Counted from the first letter of the stretch, positions 12,278-19,742 are shown. The stretch is DNA of 64,000 nucleotides from Selaginella moellendorffii (GCF_000143415.4 NW_003314306.1:931751-995750); one strand, 5' to 3'. The notes: generated by a model not told the origin, from the sequence alone. Numbers and translations are program-made.

Positions 12278-12973
12278 ATGGCGGAGCTAAACAGGCCTCC
12301 CCAGCAGCAGAAGCTCAACGGCGCCTACTACGTCCCGAATGCCTACCCGGTCGGCGACAATCGCAAGCGGCCATCGGGGCGCAGGAGCCGGATTGGATTT
12401 TGCTGCCGCTGCCTGTGCTCCACGCTCCTGGCGATCATCTTCGCGCTGGGCATCGCGGCGCTCGTCATCTGGCTCGTCCTCCGCCCCAAGGCGCCCAAGT
12501 ACACGGTCCAGGACGTGAGGATCAACGCGCTCAATGTCACCGCCGGCTCTAGATCCGTGGACACGGACATCGTGCTGGGCATCCGGGCCGAGAATCCAAA
12601 CAAGCGCATCACGATCAAGTATGGCGGCATCCACGCGCGGGTCTTCTTCCTGGGCACGCAGATTGGGGCGGGATCCATCGCTCCATTCACGCAGCCCAGG
12701 AGGAACGTGACGGTGGTGAGCGCGCCCATCCGTGGATCGGGCGTGGTAGTGTCCCAGCCCACCGCGTCCAGCCTGAGAGCGTCGGTCGATCGCAGCAGCA
12801 TTCCACTGGTTGTGGACGTGAATGTGAGGGCCAAGATCAAGACCGGGAGCGCGAGCACGTTTTGGTTCCGCGTGAGAGTGAGGTGCGCGATCCGGGTGAG
12901 CTCGCCGGCGTCGCCGGGCGGGGCGAGGATGCTGAGCAAGAACTGCAAGAGGCGTGGTGGCAAATTCTGGTAG
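12278..12973 (+). CDS. NDR1/HIN1-like (LEA_2 domain) membrane protein
   Basis: Intronless. Cys-rich CCRCLC, TM helix, LVLRPKAPKYTV, AENPNKRITIKY, PFTQPRRN and terminal C..C. Confidence 0.9.
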   Translation: MAELNRPPQQQKLNGAYYVPNAYPVGDNRKRPSGRRSRIGFCCRCLCSTLLAIIFALGIAALVIWLVLRPKAPKYTVQDVRINALNVTAGSRSVDTDIVLGIRAENPNKRITIKYGGIHARVFFLGTQIGAGSIAPFTQPRRNVTVVSAPIRGSGVVVSQPTASSLRASVDRSSIPLVVDVNVRAKIKTGSASTFWFRVRVRCAIRVSSPASPGGARMLSKNCKRRGGKFW

Positions 12974-13515
12974 AAGAAGAATGGAAATCGCCCTCCTCGC
13001 TCCCTCGCTCGCTCGCTGGGGGACGAATTTTCATATACATCCTTTCGTTTTTGGTCCCCTTTCTCTTCTCGCTCGCATTGTTTCTATAGATCGATCCAAT
13101 TCCTCCCTCTCGATGGAAATTGGCCATGGATTTGAGCTTTGTTTGTGCTGCCAAGGATCTATTCCTTGCTTTCGAGTTTCATTTTTACAGTGGTGTGAAT
13201 ACTAAAGAGATCTATAAACATGCATTCTTCGTTCGTCCGCCACGGAAATTTGCTCGCCCTTGTGGCGCGATTCCTCTTTTTTTACTGTGCGATTTACACC
13301 ATGGAAATTGCTTTTTCGCCTCGTTTCTTGGGATCGTGTGGCGTGGAGCTACCTGTCAATCTCAGACACAGAGGGTGTGATCCAGCAGTGACAAGATGCT
13401 GACGCTTGACTGGGCAGTTTGACCGGGTCAACCCATTCGGTCAACCCAGCAAAGGACTTTCGTCCATCTTTAACATTTTCGCTCTTCCTTGATGATCTAA
13501 TCCAGGAATTCTCTA

Positions 13516-14580
13516 TCACGATTTTGGAGGCGAGAATCCATAGACAGTGAAGCCACCGTCAACGCTGATCACTTGCCCGGAAACGTAGGAAGACGCTGGC
13601 ATTGCCAGGAACGCTACAACCGCGGAGACTTCGTGGGGTTCCCCGACTCGTCCCGCGGGCGTTCGATCCACCACCGCAGCTTCGTAGCCGGGCCTGCCCA
13701 GAACCTACGAGTCGAATCAGTTTGAGAAGAACTTTCGAAGAACTAACGAAAAACTTTAAGAACTTTCTACTAGAGCTTGGCACCTGTTGCGCAAGATCAG
13801 TTTTGATGTACCATGGGGCCACTGCATTGACACGGATCCCATCTTGAGCCCAGTCACACGCCAAGTTCTTGGTGATTTGATTCATGGCACCTGTTAGAAG
13901 GTAGAAGATGTATGGAAGTTATCCTTTTGCTCGTATCTACCTTTGGTGGCTGCGTAGAGTACGCCCGTGGAGATGGCCACCACTCCGGCCACCGAGGAGA
14001 TGAAAACCAGGCTGGAGTTTCCAGCGGCTTTGAGCAATGGGTGAGCCAATTGCGATGTGTGAAAGGCGGAGTCGAAGTTTGTGGAGAAAACCGTGGAGAC
14101 GTCCTCGCCAGTGTACTCCAGCGTAGGCTTTCTTACGTTGGTTCCAACGTTGTTTACCTGGAGACAAGAGGAGATTGATCAGAACAGAAGGACCAAGGAC
14201 GAAGCTCAAGAGATCTAGAAAAGATGGATAGTGCTTACAAGAATGTCGAGCTTTCCACCAAAGTGTTGGGACACAAGGCCCATGAGTGCTTCTCTCTCGC
14301 TGGGGTTGGAGAGATCACAAGTGGAGCCATGGACGTCGAGGTTGGATTGGCGCCACTCCTGGAGCCGCTCGCTCAAGCTCTGCCCGGAGCGCGAGCATGT
14401 ATACACGGAAGCTCCAAGGCCCGCAAGCTCCTCCACAACCGCTCGCCTGGGTGTCATCCAAATTTTTTTTGGGTGGATTTGAGACCATCTACATGAAAGA
14501 GCCTACCCGATTCCCCGTGTTCCTCCCGTGACGAGGGCGCTCTTGCCGCTCAAGCTCCATCGCTGGGAAAGGGATCCCAT
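13516..14580 (-). CDS. Tropinone reductase-like short-chain dehydrogenase, copy 1 (5 exons)
   Basis: [68 protein letters not shown]. Frames join intact across GT-AG introns. Confidence 0.9.
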
Positions 14581-14589
14581 TCAGAAAAG

Positions 14590-15805
14590 GATCGAACTGG
14601 AGACCTTCCGTAAAAGACAACAGCTAGATTTTATGAACTGACCAATTGCAACATGAAACCATTAGCAATCCCACAGGTAAAATGAAAGAAAAGATTCCAG
14701 TTCTGAAGCCTTCTGTGCGCTCAATTTAGGGCAAAGAAAGAGGTATGAACTAGAGACCTTCAATAACGTGATGACCAACTACACCATGAAAACATCAGCA
14801 AATGCCTCTTCCAGGCATTTGTTATTGACAAGTAAAATCAAAGGAAAGAAAATGCTTTAACATGTGGCTTCATCCGAGACCTTCAAGTGTATGAGACTGG
14901 TGTGATGACCAATTACACCATGAAACGATCACGAAATGCATTGCCTTTCCTGGGCATTGCTATTGTCCCTAACGCACAAGTAAAATAAAAGAAAAGAAAG
15001 GCCTTTTAAATTGGCTTCATGCTAGAGACCTTCAATGTGTAAGACTGACCAATTACACCATAAAACCATCACCAAATGTCTTTCTTGGGTATTCGCTTGG
15101 ACAAGCAAAATGAAAGATATTACGTTGCTTCGTCCAGGTTACAGACCTTCAATGTGTCGTGATGACCAACTTCACCAGATACCTGTTTTGGGCATTTGTA
15201 GTTAACCCACAAGTAAAATGAAAGTAAAGAAAGTGCTTCTGGCAATTGGCTTCATCCAGGTTTGAACTGGAGGTCTTCCATGAAACATTGAACCATCAAC
15301 AAATAACTTTTATGGGCATTTGTAGTTGTCATAACCCACAAGTAAAATCAAGCTTCATCTGGAGACCTTCAGTGTGTCACTACACCATGAAACCATCAGC
15401 AAATGCCTTTCCTGTTGTCCTAAATCACAAGTAAAAATCAAAGGGAAAAAAAAAAGCTTTAACATGTGGCTTCATCCAGGTTTGAAGACCTTCAATGTTT
15501 TGATAACCCCATGAAACCATCAAAACATGCCTTGCCTTTCCTTGGCATTTGCTATTGTGCCTAACTCACAAGTAAAAACAAAGCTTTAACTTATAGCTTC
15601 ATACAGGTTTGAATTTGAGGCTGTCAATATCAAAGACAAGACAGTGATAACTAACCACACTATACCATCAACAAATGCCTTCCTTGGGCATATGCCGTTG
15701 AACCCACAAGGGAAAAGAGTGCTTTCACATGTGGCTTCATCCAGGTTTGAACTGGAGACCTTCAGTGTGTTAGACTGACGTGATAACCAACTACACCATG
15801 AAACC
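14590..15805 (-). repeat. Tandem array of ~10 degenerate tRNA-Val(AAC)-derived units (~105-145 bp spacing) with a shared spacer
   Basis: Recurrent + strand pieces tggcttcatccagg / gagaccttca / gtgatgaccaactacaccatgaaacc start at ~14590, 14745, 14865, 15012, 15126, 15247, 15352, 15467, 15594 and 15732. Spacer motif aaatgcc..ggcattt..acaagtaaaa recurs. Confidence 0.85.
15732..15805 (-). tRNA. tRNA-Val (anticodon AAC), structurally intact unit of the array
   Basis: Reverse complement GGTTTCATGGTGTAGTTGGTTATCACGTCAGTCTAACACACTGAAGGTCTCCAGTTCAAACCTGGATGAAGCCA folds as a cloverleaf: acceptor GGTTTCA/TGAAGCC, anticodon stem TCAGT/ACTGA, T stem TCCAG/CTGGA. TTTT lies ~15 nt downstream. Confidence 0.85.
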
Positions 15806-15837
15806 ATTAACAAAATCTTCATTATGTGAAAGGGAAT

Positions 15838-16909
<1,072 letters not shown>

Positions 16910-17051
16910 TGCAAATCGAAATACCAAACTTCTCTCTCTGTTTTTGGCCACAGTGATTTGTGCTGCCTCGTGTCCGCATGGAAGAAGGACACCTGAAAGC
17001 TCAAGATCTTTCTATTATAGTAGCTAATTACATGTGTTTTAAGGCTACATT

Positions 17052-17436
17052 TTACCACTCAGATTCCACAACTGGAACATACCAATACTTGTAGCCCAAG
17101 TCCCAACCAGTGTTAAACAAAGCAAAGTCTAAGACATACCACTCGAGGGGACCGTAATCATAGTTCTTTTTTTGGTCATAAGCATTGAACGAGCGTGACT
17201 TGCCATTCAAGGAGACGTCGCACCAAAAGAGCGTGTTTCCGAACACTCGATCGCCGAATGGCCAGCCGAATGAAGCCTTGGGCTTGATCTTCTGTGCCCC
17301 CAAATCGTTTTGCGCGGATCGGCAGTGGAGAAATAGATCAAACTTAGAGCAATTAAAGATCGTGACGGTCTTTGCTCCTCCTGCTGCTATGAGAACTAGC
17401 AAGAGGGCAAGAACAAAAAGATTTCGGTGATAGCAT
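17052..17436 (-). pseudogene. S-protein homologue (SPH / Self-incomp_S1), frameshifted in the signal peptide
   Basis: Mature part has LHCRSAQNDLG, FGWPF, GNTLFWC and FNAY. The ATG at 17436, homologous to the paralog's start, is out of frame because of an indel at a T5 tract. TATAAAT at 17471-17477. Confidence 0.7.
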
Positions 17437-17583
17437 TGGAAAGTTCAGGGAGGACACTCGTGATCATTTGATTTATACTAGTCCAAAATATCAAACCTTG
17501 GACCGCAAAACTATCTCATGTAGTTTAAAGTTCGTATCTTTTCTTTTGTCCATAGACACAAGAACCTTCAAGCTTTGATCGTC

Positions 17584-18104
17584 TCATCTCTGGACGGACA
17601 GCTTCTCCTGGAAGATAATATCGTCCTCAAGGATTGGATTGGAATCTGGATCAAGGTATGGAGGAAGCAGCACTGCCGTTTTCTGGGTAGCCAAGCTCGC
17701 ACGGAAGGCCTCGGCGATCTTCTCCGGCCCGTAGTAGTGACCCTCGGCTACGTGAATCGAGGCATGCACCAAGAACCCATCCTCGATCACCAAGTTGTAG
17801 AAGTTGCATTGTGTTCCTCGGTAGATCTTCCGGAAGCGGGGCTTGTGTAGATCAAACTTGAGCTCGCCCAGGCTAAAGAGCGTTGTAAGCCCCTGGAAGA
17901 AAAGACTAAAGCCCACTCGATCTCGCTGAGTGAAACTTACGTTGAAGTGGAACTGGACAATGTCGTCTTTCCATTGCTCGAGCAGCGCGTCCAGTTGCTT
18001 CCACACCTCCTCTCGAGAGACGCCCCTCTTCTCGTACATGTCCTCCAAGCGCGAGGTCGATTCATCCTCTCCTTTTCCTTCGTGAGATCCAGAACGGTTG
18101 CCAC
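17584..18104 (-). CDS. Hypothetical protein of unknown family (5' end unclear)
   Basis: 154-aa ORF with coding-like GC content and a plausible 48-nt in-frame GTAAG..CAG intron (17893-17940). A deleted copy of its 3' end lies at ~19540-19625. Confidence 0.4.
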
Positions 18105-18349: not shown

Positions 18350-18445
18350 ACCGAGATTTCAAGCCCCAGAATGAGACCGAACACCGCCCTCCATTTTACC
18401 ACTTGCGGCATCCGCTCAGCGCGCTCATGAGCGTCATAAATCCCG
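18350..18445 (-). pseudogene. Fragment of the 3' end of the neighbouring PPR gene
   Basis: Closely matches 19801-19900 (gatttcaagccccagaatgaga..ccacttgcggcatccg..catgagcgtca). A further inverted fragment lies at ~18160-18190. Confidence 0.65.
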
Positions 18446-18512
18446 TCGCGCCGATGAGAAACAGCAATTTTCCTTGACACGAGGTTGGAGCTGCGGACTC
18501 GGTTTGGACGAC

Positions 18513-18980
18513 AGGCGTGAAATAGAAGAAGACGGCGGACATGTCCTGGGCGGTGGATTTCTTCCTCACATTGTGTCCTACGTTGCTTACCTGGAGAAAC
18601 ACTTGGGACAAAGCCTGGATCGCTTCCTCACATTGTTTCCTACGTTGTTTACATCTCAATCATAATCCATCAATCGAGACAAACTAACGCGAGAAGAAAG
18701 CGGATTTACTCGAGGCAAAAACTTCGTTGTCGAGCTTTCCGCCTAAGTAAGGGGACACAAGCGGCAAGAACTTCAAAACTTCTTTACAAGGATGTCGAGC
18801 TTTTCCGCCAAAATGTTGCCCATTCATGAGCGCTCTCTCGCTGGGCTTGGAGAGGCCACAGTGGATTGGCGCCACTTGTGGAGCCGCTCATATATTACAC
18901 AGAAGCTCCAAGCCCCGCAAGCTCGATTCATGAGTTTTTATCGACGAGTAACCCATCAAAGAACTTAACCCGATTATACG
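18513..18980 (-). pseudogene. Degenerate third tropinone-reductase-like gene
   Basis: Scrambled, partly duplicated remnants VSNVG..VRK, HFGGK, LGGKLD and LAGLGASV, with deletions and frameshifts. Confidence 0.75.
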
Positions 18981-19050
18981 AGATTTCTCTTCCACAGCCA
19001 GCTCATTGTTCTTAATCTTTTATAATAGAACTATTACATGACATTAGTTT

Positions 19051-19440
19051 TTACCACTCAAACTCCACAACTGGAACATACCATTTCCTGGTTTCTTGGT
19101 GCCAACCAGTGCCAAACAAAGCAAAGTCCAAAAGATACCACTCGATCTGCTCGTAATTGGAGCTCTTTTTTTGGTCGTAAGCATGGAACTGGAATGACTT
19201 ACCATCCAAGGAGAAGTCACACCAAAAGAGCGTGTTTCCAACCCATCGATCACCGAATGGCCAGCCGAATGAATCCTTGGGCTTGAGCGTCTGTGCCCCC
19301 AAATCGTTCTGCTTGGATCGGCAGTGGAGCGATAGATCCGACTCAGAGCGATTAAAGATCTTCACGGTCTTTGCTTCTGCTGCCGCTGTCATGAGAACTA
19401 GCAAGAGTGGAAGAACGTGACAAGATTTCGGTGATAGCAT
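19051..19440 (-). CDS. Secreted S-protein homologue (SPH / Self-incomp_S1 family), 129 aa
   Basis: Signal peptide followed by TVKIFN..LSLHCRSKQNDLG..FGWPF..GNTLFWC..FHAY..EW. Intronless; TATAAAT at 19475-19481. Confidence 0.85.
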   Translation of the reverse strand: MLSPKSCHVLPLLLVLMTAAAEAKTVKIFNRSESDLSLHCRSKQNDLGAQTLKPKDSFGWPFGDRWVGNTLFWCDFSLDGKSFQFHAYDQKKSSNYEQIEWYLLDFALFGTGWHQETRKWYVPVVEFEW

Positions 19441-19742
19441 TGGAAAGTTGAGGGAGGGCAATTGCGATCATCTGATTTATAGTTGTCGAACTTGGACCGC
19501 TAAACTATCTCATACGGCTTGAAGTTTTCGCGGCATTCATAGTTGAGACAAAAACCTTCAAGCCTTGACTGTCTTATCTCTGGATGGGCAGCTTATCCCG
19601 GAAGTATGGAGGTAGCAGCACTGCGAGATTCAACACAAAGTTGCCACCTAGAGTTCTTTCACAAATGCCTGGTCGGGCATTTGCCTGAAACTCTATAATG
19701 GTTTACCAGATGTCTTTGAAAACGAGAAGCTGTAATGGATAT

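Follow-up and report, generated by a model that had tools for sequence, protein, structure and literature searches.

A degraded tandem array of tRNA-Val(AAC) genes, probably the relic of a homocluster, between two expressed tropinone-reductase-like genes of Selaginella moellendorffii

The locus described here lies within a 64-kb stretch of Selaginella moellendorffii DNA, the whole of which was analysed and is referred to as the window. It contains two tropinone-reductase-like SDR genes, copy 2 and copy 1, that are separated by a stop-to-ATG spacer of 1.26 kb (14581-15837). The spacer holds one intact tRNA-Val(AAC) gene and nine degraded head-to-tail copies of it, and all of these features, the tRNA, the degraded units and both SDR genes, lie on the minus strand (Table 1). 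The wider locus is a duplicated module in which a self-incompatibility-S1-like (SPH) gene is followed by an SDR gene, and the SPH genes form a paralogous block at 17050-17614 and 19049-19604. Only 142 nt separate the stop codon of SPH gene a from the ATG of copy 2, so tight gene spacing is normal here. Next to the locus lies an NDR1/HIN1-like gene that shares 99% identity with NHL6 of Selaginella moellendorffii.

The models of the two SDR genes were built from splice joints in RNA contigs and their reading frames checked, and homology was searched with exons one at a time. Each copy carries the TGxxxGIG, NNVG and YxxxK motifs, and the exons match the Pfam families adh_short and adh_short_C2. 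Among PDB entries, exon 3 of copy 1 matches the At1g07440 tropinone reductase homolog best (E 8e-22), with tropinone reductases I and II next. The proteins are 85% identical, and a dN/dS of 0.16 with a dS of 0.46 indicates that both genes are under purifying selection. Homology between the copies at the DNA level is 78% with introns included, and it ends within a few nucleotides of the ATG and of the stop. Upstream of the two genes there is no significant homology (91% of 500 shuffles reached at least the same score), and a common TATA-containing stretch is found upstream of copy 2 and of a degenerate third SDR copy. When the copy 2 last exon served as query, only distant SDRs were returned, the best of which lies in unrelated DNA without a tRNA.

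Table 1. Positions of the genes, array units and motifs at the locus, counted from the first letter of the window
Feature	Position	Strand	Basis
SPH gene a, self-incompatibility-S1-like	17052..17402	-	Pfam PF05938
SDR copy 2, tropinone-reductase-like, 5 exons, 264 aa, intact	15838..16909	-	splice joints, frame check, Pfam
SDR copy 2 exons	16909-16836, 16757-16550, 16453-16234, 16183-16077, 16023-15838	-	RNA-contig joints
ATTAAA, poly(A)-signal-like, overlapping the copy 2 stop codon	15842-15837	-	sequence
Spacer of 32 nt, copy 2 stop to tRNA	15806..15837	-	sequence; X5 RNA contig crosses to 15801
AATGAA, poly(A)-signal-like, in the 32-nt spacer	15823-15818	-	sequence
Unit 1, intact tRNA-Val(AAC): A box, B-box core GTTCAAACC, discriminator A	15732..15805	-	ARAGORN, Rfam
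T4 run, candidate Pol III terminator of unit 1, 16 nt past the tRNA 3' end	15713..15716	-	sequence
Spacer 1 and units 2-9, degraded tRNA-Val units with co-amplified spacers of ~60-75 nt	14664..15731	-	repeats, BLASTN, alignment
Unit 10, presumed core promoter and 5' leader of copy 1	14581..14663	-	alignment, motifs
Unit 10 parts: tRNA 5' half, replaced middle, B-box-like GTTCGATCC, TTTTCTGA, then copy 1 ATG	14581..14663	-	sequence
Unit 10 middle: 30 nt replaced, TATA-like CATAAAAT	14635-14628	-	sequence
SDR copy 1, tropinone-reductase-like, 5 exons, 264 aa, intact	13516..14580	-	splice joints, frame check, Pfam, PDB match
SDR copy 1 exons	14580-14507, 14446-14239, 14157-13941, 13890-13784, 13704-13516	-	RNA-contig joints

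ARAGORN detects a single tRNA in the 64-kb window, a tRNA-Val(AAC) at 15731/2-15805, and the same unit, scored with the Rfam tRNA model (gathering score 29), is the sole hit of any Rfam family above gathering score in the whole window. Its 5' end is exactly 32 nt from the stop codon of copy 2 (TAA, 15840-15838). When unit 1 and its spacer are used as a BLASTN query against the window, matches with E values down to 6e-16 are confined to 14588-15812, with no significant match elsewhere in the 64 kb, and a repeat search places 14 direct-repeat families in register across the array. Tandem Repeats Finder gives zero rows for the array because the units are only ~72% alike and rich in indels, and the array was resolved by BLASTN, direct-repeat search and MAFFT instead. 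In our own segmentation, with the units aligned by MAFFT, ten units start near 15805, 15666, 15518, 15394, 15294, 15177, 15067, 14927, 14793 and 14660. Each consists of a tRNA and a conserved spacer of ~60-75 nt, with a period of 100-150 nt in the alignment.

At the other end of the spacer, unit 10 closes with the B-box-like GTTCGATCC (14597-14589), TTTT (14588-14585) and CTGA, which is followed directly by the ATG of copy 1 (14580-14578), so that the motif ends 8 nt upstream of the start codon. Descent of this motif from an ancestral SDR leader was considered and rejected: the DNA upstream of copy 1 has no significant homology to that upstream of copy 2, so the motif is array sequence. This anatomy confirms the original prediction, made from the sequence alone, of about ten head-to-tail tRNA-Val(AAC) units on the same strand as both SDR genes, on which ARAGORN, Rfam, BLASTN and the alignment agree; the predicted interval coincides exactly with the spacer from stop to ATG. 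The predicted distance of 32 nt from the copy 2 stop to the intact tRNA is exact, and that of ~9 nt from the last unit to the copy 1 ATG differs little from the 8 nt found. The last unit had also been credited with a perfect B box; it does contain a 9-nt core followed by TTTT, but not a strict 11-nt match.

The ten units are in very different states of preservation. With the Rfam tRNA model, only unit 1 exceeds the gathering score (59.9 bits); unit 8 is the runner-up at 23.4 bits, and the remaining units go undetected even at E = 10. The commonest lesion is deletion of the T arm, lost wholly or partly from units 3, 4, 6, 7 and 8 in the alignment, while units 9 and 10 are missing the 3' half of the T stem and the acceptor strand. 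The anticodon arm is absent or shortened in units 3-7 and 9 and has been replaced in unit 10. Half of the units (1, 6, 7, 8 and 9) still match the A box and three of the ten (1, 5 and 10) keep the 9-nt B-box core; unit 1 alone has both, and the strict 11-nt B box (GGTTCGANNCC) is matched by none of the ten. Single-strand folding of units 2, 5, 8 and 10 gives energies no better than those of shuffled sequence. Judged by these measures one unit in ten is foldable as a tRNA, and the other nine are classed as pseudogenes.

Though itself a perfect tRNA, unit 1 differs from its sister units by 16-33%. Between 15732 and 15795 it has no listed differences from an RNA contig that derives from another locus. 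Because it is pristine beside such diverged sisters, and shows no listed differences from that contig, unit 1 must have been preserved, through selection or gene conversion, until recent times. We take it to be the one gene of the cluster that still functions, presumably with Pol III activity.

Evidence at the RNA level comes from the contigs of four runs from four studies (X1, X2, X5 and X8; k = 31). Contigs were used rather than raw reads, and they cannot show true RNA ends, tails, rare read-through or short-lived precursors. Runs that match the locus contain one quarter of the words sampled, as expected if exons only are represented. GT-AG splice joints of both SDR genes are found in all four, and copies 1 and 2 are separate, expressed and spliced Pol II genes. 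None of the four runs has a contig on 14671-15636 (units 2-9), and none has a contig that connects the copy 2 3' UTR with the body of the tRNA or with its trailer (15669-15731). A contig of X2 with a depth of 168 does cover 15732-15795, but it goes on for 255 letters of foreign sequence and so stems from a different tRNA-Val(AAC) locus.

The 3' end of copy 2 is approached by one contig, from X5, which passes through exon 4, exon 5 and the stop codon to a flush end at 15801, 5 nt inside the tRNA. This is an end of coverage rather than a branch at a repeat, because k = 31 allows ~30 nt of extension into shared tRNA sequence. The contigs of X1, X2 and X8 break at 15878, with nothing placed from there to the tRNA, and so are uninformative on the end of copy 2. 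On the 5' side of copy 2 a contig extends to 16962, so that its leader measures at least 53 nt. For copy 1, the X2 contig of exon 1 reaches 14587-14589, 7-9 nt before the ATG, where it runs into Illumina adapter, its last two bases being ambiguous with the first two of the adapter. Adapter-abutted contig ends were rejected as true termini, the X2 end at 13446 being overrun in X5 and X8; because such ends are unreliable, 14587-14589 is only suggestive of the 5' end of copy 1.

A second sequence of the locus is available from the S. moellendorffii v1 scaffold GL377597.1 (GCA_000143415.2). It is 98.2-98.4% identical to the window outside the array, a level expected between haplotypes, and apparently represents the other haplotype of the sequenced plant. 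The array is present in this independent sequence too, in altered form, and is therefore not an assembly artefact. The original prediction had counted absence of the array from the other haplotype among the findings that would speak against an active role; its presence there shows its age, not a function.

In the other haplotype, unit 1 carries two substitutions, and a deletion of 10 nt has taken out most of its T arm. The T arm of unit 2 is shorter by 9 nt, a loss of 41 nt has left little of unit 3, an extra partial unit of 59 nt is found between units 9 and 10, and unit 10 has an 11-nt insertion. The 32-nt spacer differs by one substitution (15826 C/G). ARAGORN finds no tRNA in the scaffold sequence, and unit 1 scores 35.7 bits with Rfam instead of 59.9, its T arm being left out of the alignment and the acceptor strand of the match being spurious. 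Over the array as a whole the two haplotypes differ by 4.8% substitutions and by 12 indel events covering 204 columns, the T-arm loss of unit 1 and 11 further events. Substitutions amount to 3.1-3.6% in neighbouring intergenic DNA, 2.2-3.1% in the SDR introns and 0.75-1.1% in the SDR exons. The array has thus been no less free to diverge than introns or neutral DNA, and it is not under constraint. Both SDR genes retain intact 264-aa ORFs in the other haplotype, and the last exon of copy 2 is 100% identical. Because unit 1 is broken there while both genes are intact, the intact tRNA is dispensable, at least in heterozygotes.

Several features of the array are those of a tDNA homocluster: it contains one isoacceptor, its units follow one another head to tail within 1 kb, the spacer is repeated along with them, and there is structural and copy-number polymorphism between haplotypes. 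Such a cluster should consist of intact tRNA genes with cloverleaf, A box, B box and T-run terminator; as only unit 1 qualifies, the array is filed as the relic of a homocluster. The mean pairwise Jukes-Cantor distance between units is 0.35, and the introns of the SDR paralogs differ by 0.45. These values, with the dS of 0.46, place the amplification of the array close in time to the SDR duplication and long before the haplotypes split.

Taken together, the array is probably the relic of a tandem tRNA-Val(AAC) homocluster that is decaying neutrally in place, and not an RNA-processing device. A unit of tRNA and ~60-nt spacer would have been amplified at about the time when the neighbouring SDR gene duplicated, with neutral decay since, so that unit 1 alone would still be a tRNA gene, and only in the haplotype of the window. 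Signals of the poly(A) type within the 32-nt spacer would end the copy 2 mRNA no more than ~40 nt past its stop codon. ATTAAA and AATGAA are suitably spaced for cleavage near 15800, so that a normal poly(A) site would account for this end without RNase P. Transcription of copy 1 would start from a core promoter within the last tRNA-derived unit, where the TATA-like CATAAAAT stands ~53 nt before the ATG; since only array DNA lies upstream of copy 1, its promoter must lie in tRNA-derived DNA.

Two predicted properties of the flanking genes agree with the RNA contigs, namely that copy 2 has almost no 3' UTR (~40 nt) and that copy 1 has no room for an ordinary promoter or leader outside the array, the position of the promoter itself being presumed. 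The original prediction also offered active roles such as mRNA end formation, dicistron punctuation and small-RNA production, with simple decay of a tRNA cluster as the null hypothesis. It is the null hypothesis that fits best. Units 2-9 devoid of contigs in all four runs, a single foldable unit, B-box cores in three units of ten, fast divergence and a broken tRNA in the other haplotype leave the active roles unsupported.

Three observations stand as counterpoints to decay. Unit 1 does place a functional tRNA gene only 32 nt from a stop codon; the one contig that informs on the copy 2 end stops 5 nt past the start of the tRNA, roughly as RNase P or a roadblock would predict; and the persistence of a 1.2-kb relic in a compact, deletion-prone genome could hint at use as a spacer or promoter. 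One alternative combines these roles. In the haplotype with an intact unit 1, the tRNA would set the 3' end of copy 2, by RNase P or by a Pol III block, and the promoter of copy 1 would have been built from a decayed unit, with the TATA-like element arising in the former anticodon region. We regard this as doubtful; if the tRNA did set the copy 2 end, the 10-nt T-arm deletion of the other haplotype would amount to a natural loss-of-function mutation, and the mRNA end would be shifted in that allele.

RNase P forms the 3' end of the Pol II transcript MALAT1 at a tRNA-like fold, mascRNA. In a similar scheme, Pol II transcripts of copy 2 would run into the intact tRNA, which is on the same strand 32 nt past the stop, and would either be cut at its 5' end or persist as mRNA-tRNA dicistrons like those reported in vascular plants. 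In favour, the X5 contig ends at 15801 with nothing seen beyond. The likeness to MALAT1 is that the apparent 3' end of copy 2 is followed at once by a cloverleaf, in the window haplotype only. The differences are that no A-rich or U-rich stabilising tracts occur in 15806-15870, where the ordinary poly(A)-type hexamers ATTAAA and AATGAA are present instead, and that unit 1 is a real tRNA gene and not a mimic. Furthermore, the contig extends 5 nt beyond the predicted cleavage site (to 15801, not 15806, although contigs cannot show an end or a tail), and in the other haplotype, where the T arm is gone, copy 2 is nonetheless intact with an unchanged last exon. For dicistrons the species itself is a favourable setting, as S. 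moellendorffii has the most reported dicistronic tRNA-mRNA loci of nine surveyed plants, with 23 tRNA genes and 49 transcripts (Hortic Res 2021, PMC8166872). Published tRNA-Val(AAC) dicistrons at GL377589 and GL377634 have gaps of 166 and 164 nt (PMC8166872), and other tRNA-mRNA pairs of this species are only 1-10 nt apart (PMC8166872 supplement). The SDR array resembles these loci in having a tRNA gene on the same strand and tens of nucleotides from a protein gene, but differs from them in that, as far as contigs can show, the four runs give no continuous coverage from mRNA to tRNA. The published list does not include it (PMC8166872), though the v1 annotation would have hidden the locus, since with both SDRs fused in one model the tRNA would have looked intronic. 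On balance, processing at the tRNA or a dicistronic transcript is unlikely.

A role as insulator or roadblock, in which TFIIIC and TFIIIB at unit 1 and at the remaining B-box-like sites would stop Pol II read-through and shield the promoter of copy 1, is very unlikely. The barrier activity of tDNAs is established in yeast and mammals (reviewed in PMC13578239), the A box and B-box core of unit 1 are intact, units 5 and 10 keep B-box cores, and no read-through RNA is seen across the array. However, the conserved GGTTCGANNCC B boxes of tDNA insulators are not found in any of the ten units, and even the shorter core is confined to three. T-arm deletions are the commonest lesion, with two more in the other haplotype including that of unit 1, a pattern opposite to that predicted from selection for TFIIIC binding.

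Clustered plant tDNAs are silenced by DNA methylation (PMC7544208), and the array might by analogy be methylated heterochromatin that gives siRNAs or tRNA fragments and may modulate both SDR genes. Its CpG observed/expected ratio is 0.29, against 0.85-0.99 in the flanks. We considered this depletion as a footprint of methylation and rejected it: the consensus unit itself has a ratio of 0.17, with CpG sites too few to test, so the depletion was inherited from the founder sequence and says nothing on methylation. With both flanking genes expressed as well, a silenced repeat is highly improbable.

The remaining alternative, a fused gene or an SDR2-SDR1 read-through transcript with the array as intron or punctuation, is suggested by the v1 annotation, which has one 561-residue product over both SDRs, and by one X2 contig that connects 16232 to 13888; it is hardly credible, as contigs run straight through the copy 2 stop, no joint leaves the last exon of copy 2 or enters exon 1 of copy 1, and the array is without coverage. 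The joint from 16232 to 13888 was rejected as splicing across the array. The two paralogs, once spliced, share 54 identical nucleotides at this point, and X1, X2 and X5 each show one path through them, so the joint represents a collapse of the paralogs in the k-mer graph.

Decay of a tRNA-Val(AAC) gene cluster, the reading that we prefer, has parallels in other plants. Arabidopsis chromosome 5 carries a tandem tRNA-Cys homocluster with pseudogenes and copy-number polymorphism (PMC10701932), and Pro and Ser-Tyr-Tyr tDNA clusters are known from the same plant, where clustered tDNAs are epigenetically silenced (PMC7544208). The array has in common with the Arabidopsis homoclusters the head-to-tail repetition of one tRNA, the co-amplified spacer and the presence of pseudogenes beside functional copies; it varies between haplotypes as they vary between accessions. 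It is unlike them in its period, 100-150 nt against 0.4-1.5 kb, in having nine of its ten copies dead, in being wedged exactly from stop to start between two expressed genes, and in occurring in a lycophyte. In the literature we found no description of such a tDNA cluster for a lycophyte, and recent surveys of homoclusters in land plants give no Selaginella example. Like tRNA-derived SINEs, the array consists of tRNA-derived sequence with remnants of an internal Pol III promoter, but its copies are tandem with the whole spacer co-repeated, there is no other copy in the 64-kb window, and of the SINE hallmarks neither a tail nor target-site duplications are found in the array.

As a decaying tRNA gene cluster the array is ordinary, tandem tDNA homoclusters being already known. 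Its anatomy corrects the fused 561-aa gene model of the v1 annotation, and it reveals that a compact genome tolerates a tRNA gene 32 nt past a stop codon and a start codon 8 nt past tRNA-derived DNA. The pair of intact and broken tRNA alleles provides a natural experiment on whether a tRNA structure beside a 3' UTR affects mRNA end formation or tRNA-mRNA co-transcription, which is a live question in the literature on plant mobile mRNAs.

In the v1 annotation of S. moellendorffii the two tropinone-reductase-like SDR genes are joined into a single protein of 561 residues with two SDR domains (L001:11248-14613, on the scaffold of the apparent other haplotype, equivalent to window 13516-16909), and the tRNA array between them is treated as an intron. 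This fused model is contradicted by the RNA contigs, which give two separate genes of 264 aa, both having a start codon and a stop codon of their own.

Upstream of the pair, a fragmentary third SDR copy sits downstream of a second self-incompatibility-S1-like (SPH) gene, an arrangement that makes this stretch a duplicated SPH-SDR module. The first gene of this type, SPH-a, is an ORF with a TTG start whose frame differs from the N-terminus seen in SPH-b; because it is 6% different from L001, its sequence suggests that it may be decaying. At the opposite end of the pair, NHL6 and SDR copy 1 (minus strand) are convergent genes. A contig from RNA run X8 (window 12900-13702), labelled 'organism B' and carrying many SNPs and small indels relative to the window, runs unbroken from the 3′ end of NHL6 into the last exon of SDR copy 1, and the two 3′ UTRs may therefore overlap or abut.

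Features around and within the tRNA-Val(AAC) array
Feature	Window position	Strand	Remark
NHL6	12278-12973	+	
Spacer palindrome, example	14809-14830		
Spacer palindrome, example	14940-14962		
Spacer palindrome, example	15676-15700		
SPH-a	17052-17402	-	
154-aa ORF	17584-18048	-	between SPH-a and SDR relic
Third SDR copy, fragmentary	18400-18990	-	in pieces, with 70-90% similarity to SDR copies 1 and 2
SPH-b	19051-19461	-	second S1-like gene

Within the array, most spacers hold a palindrome composed of CAAATGCC, a 7-nt loop and GGCATTTG, which ends about 6-10 nt before the start of the next tRNA and is evidently a component of the ancestral repeat unit. Among the decayed units (window 14581-15805; L001:12303-13509) the T arm, which contains the B box, is a recurrent target of deletion: it is affected in units 3, 4, 6, 7 and 8 of the window, with two more independent deletions in units 1 and 2 of the other haplotype. 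One possible cause of such recurrence is a deletion hotspot driven by hairpins; another is that selection has acted against TFIIIC sites.

The tRNA-Val(AAC) sequence of window 15732-15795 also appears in a contig of RNA run X2 (depth 168), where the 255 nt of 3′ flanking sequence differ from those in the window. Long RNA therefore includes a further tRNA-Val(AAC) locus, possibly the one already published as dicistronic (GL377589/GL377634).
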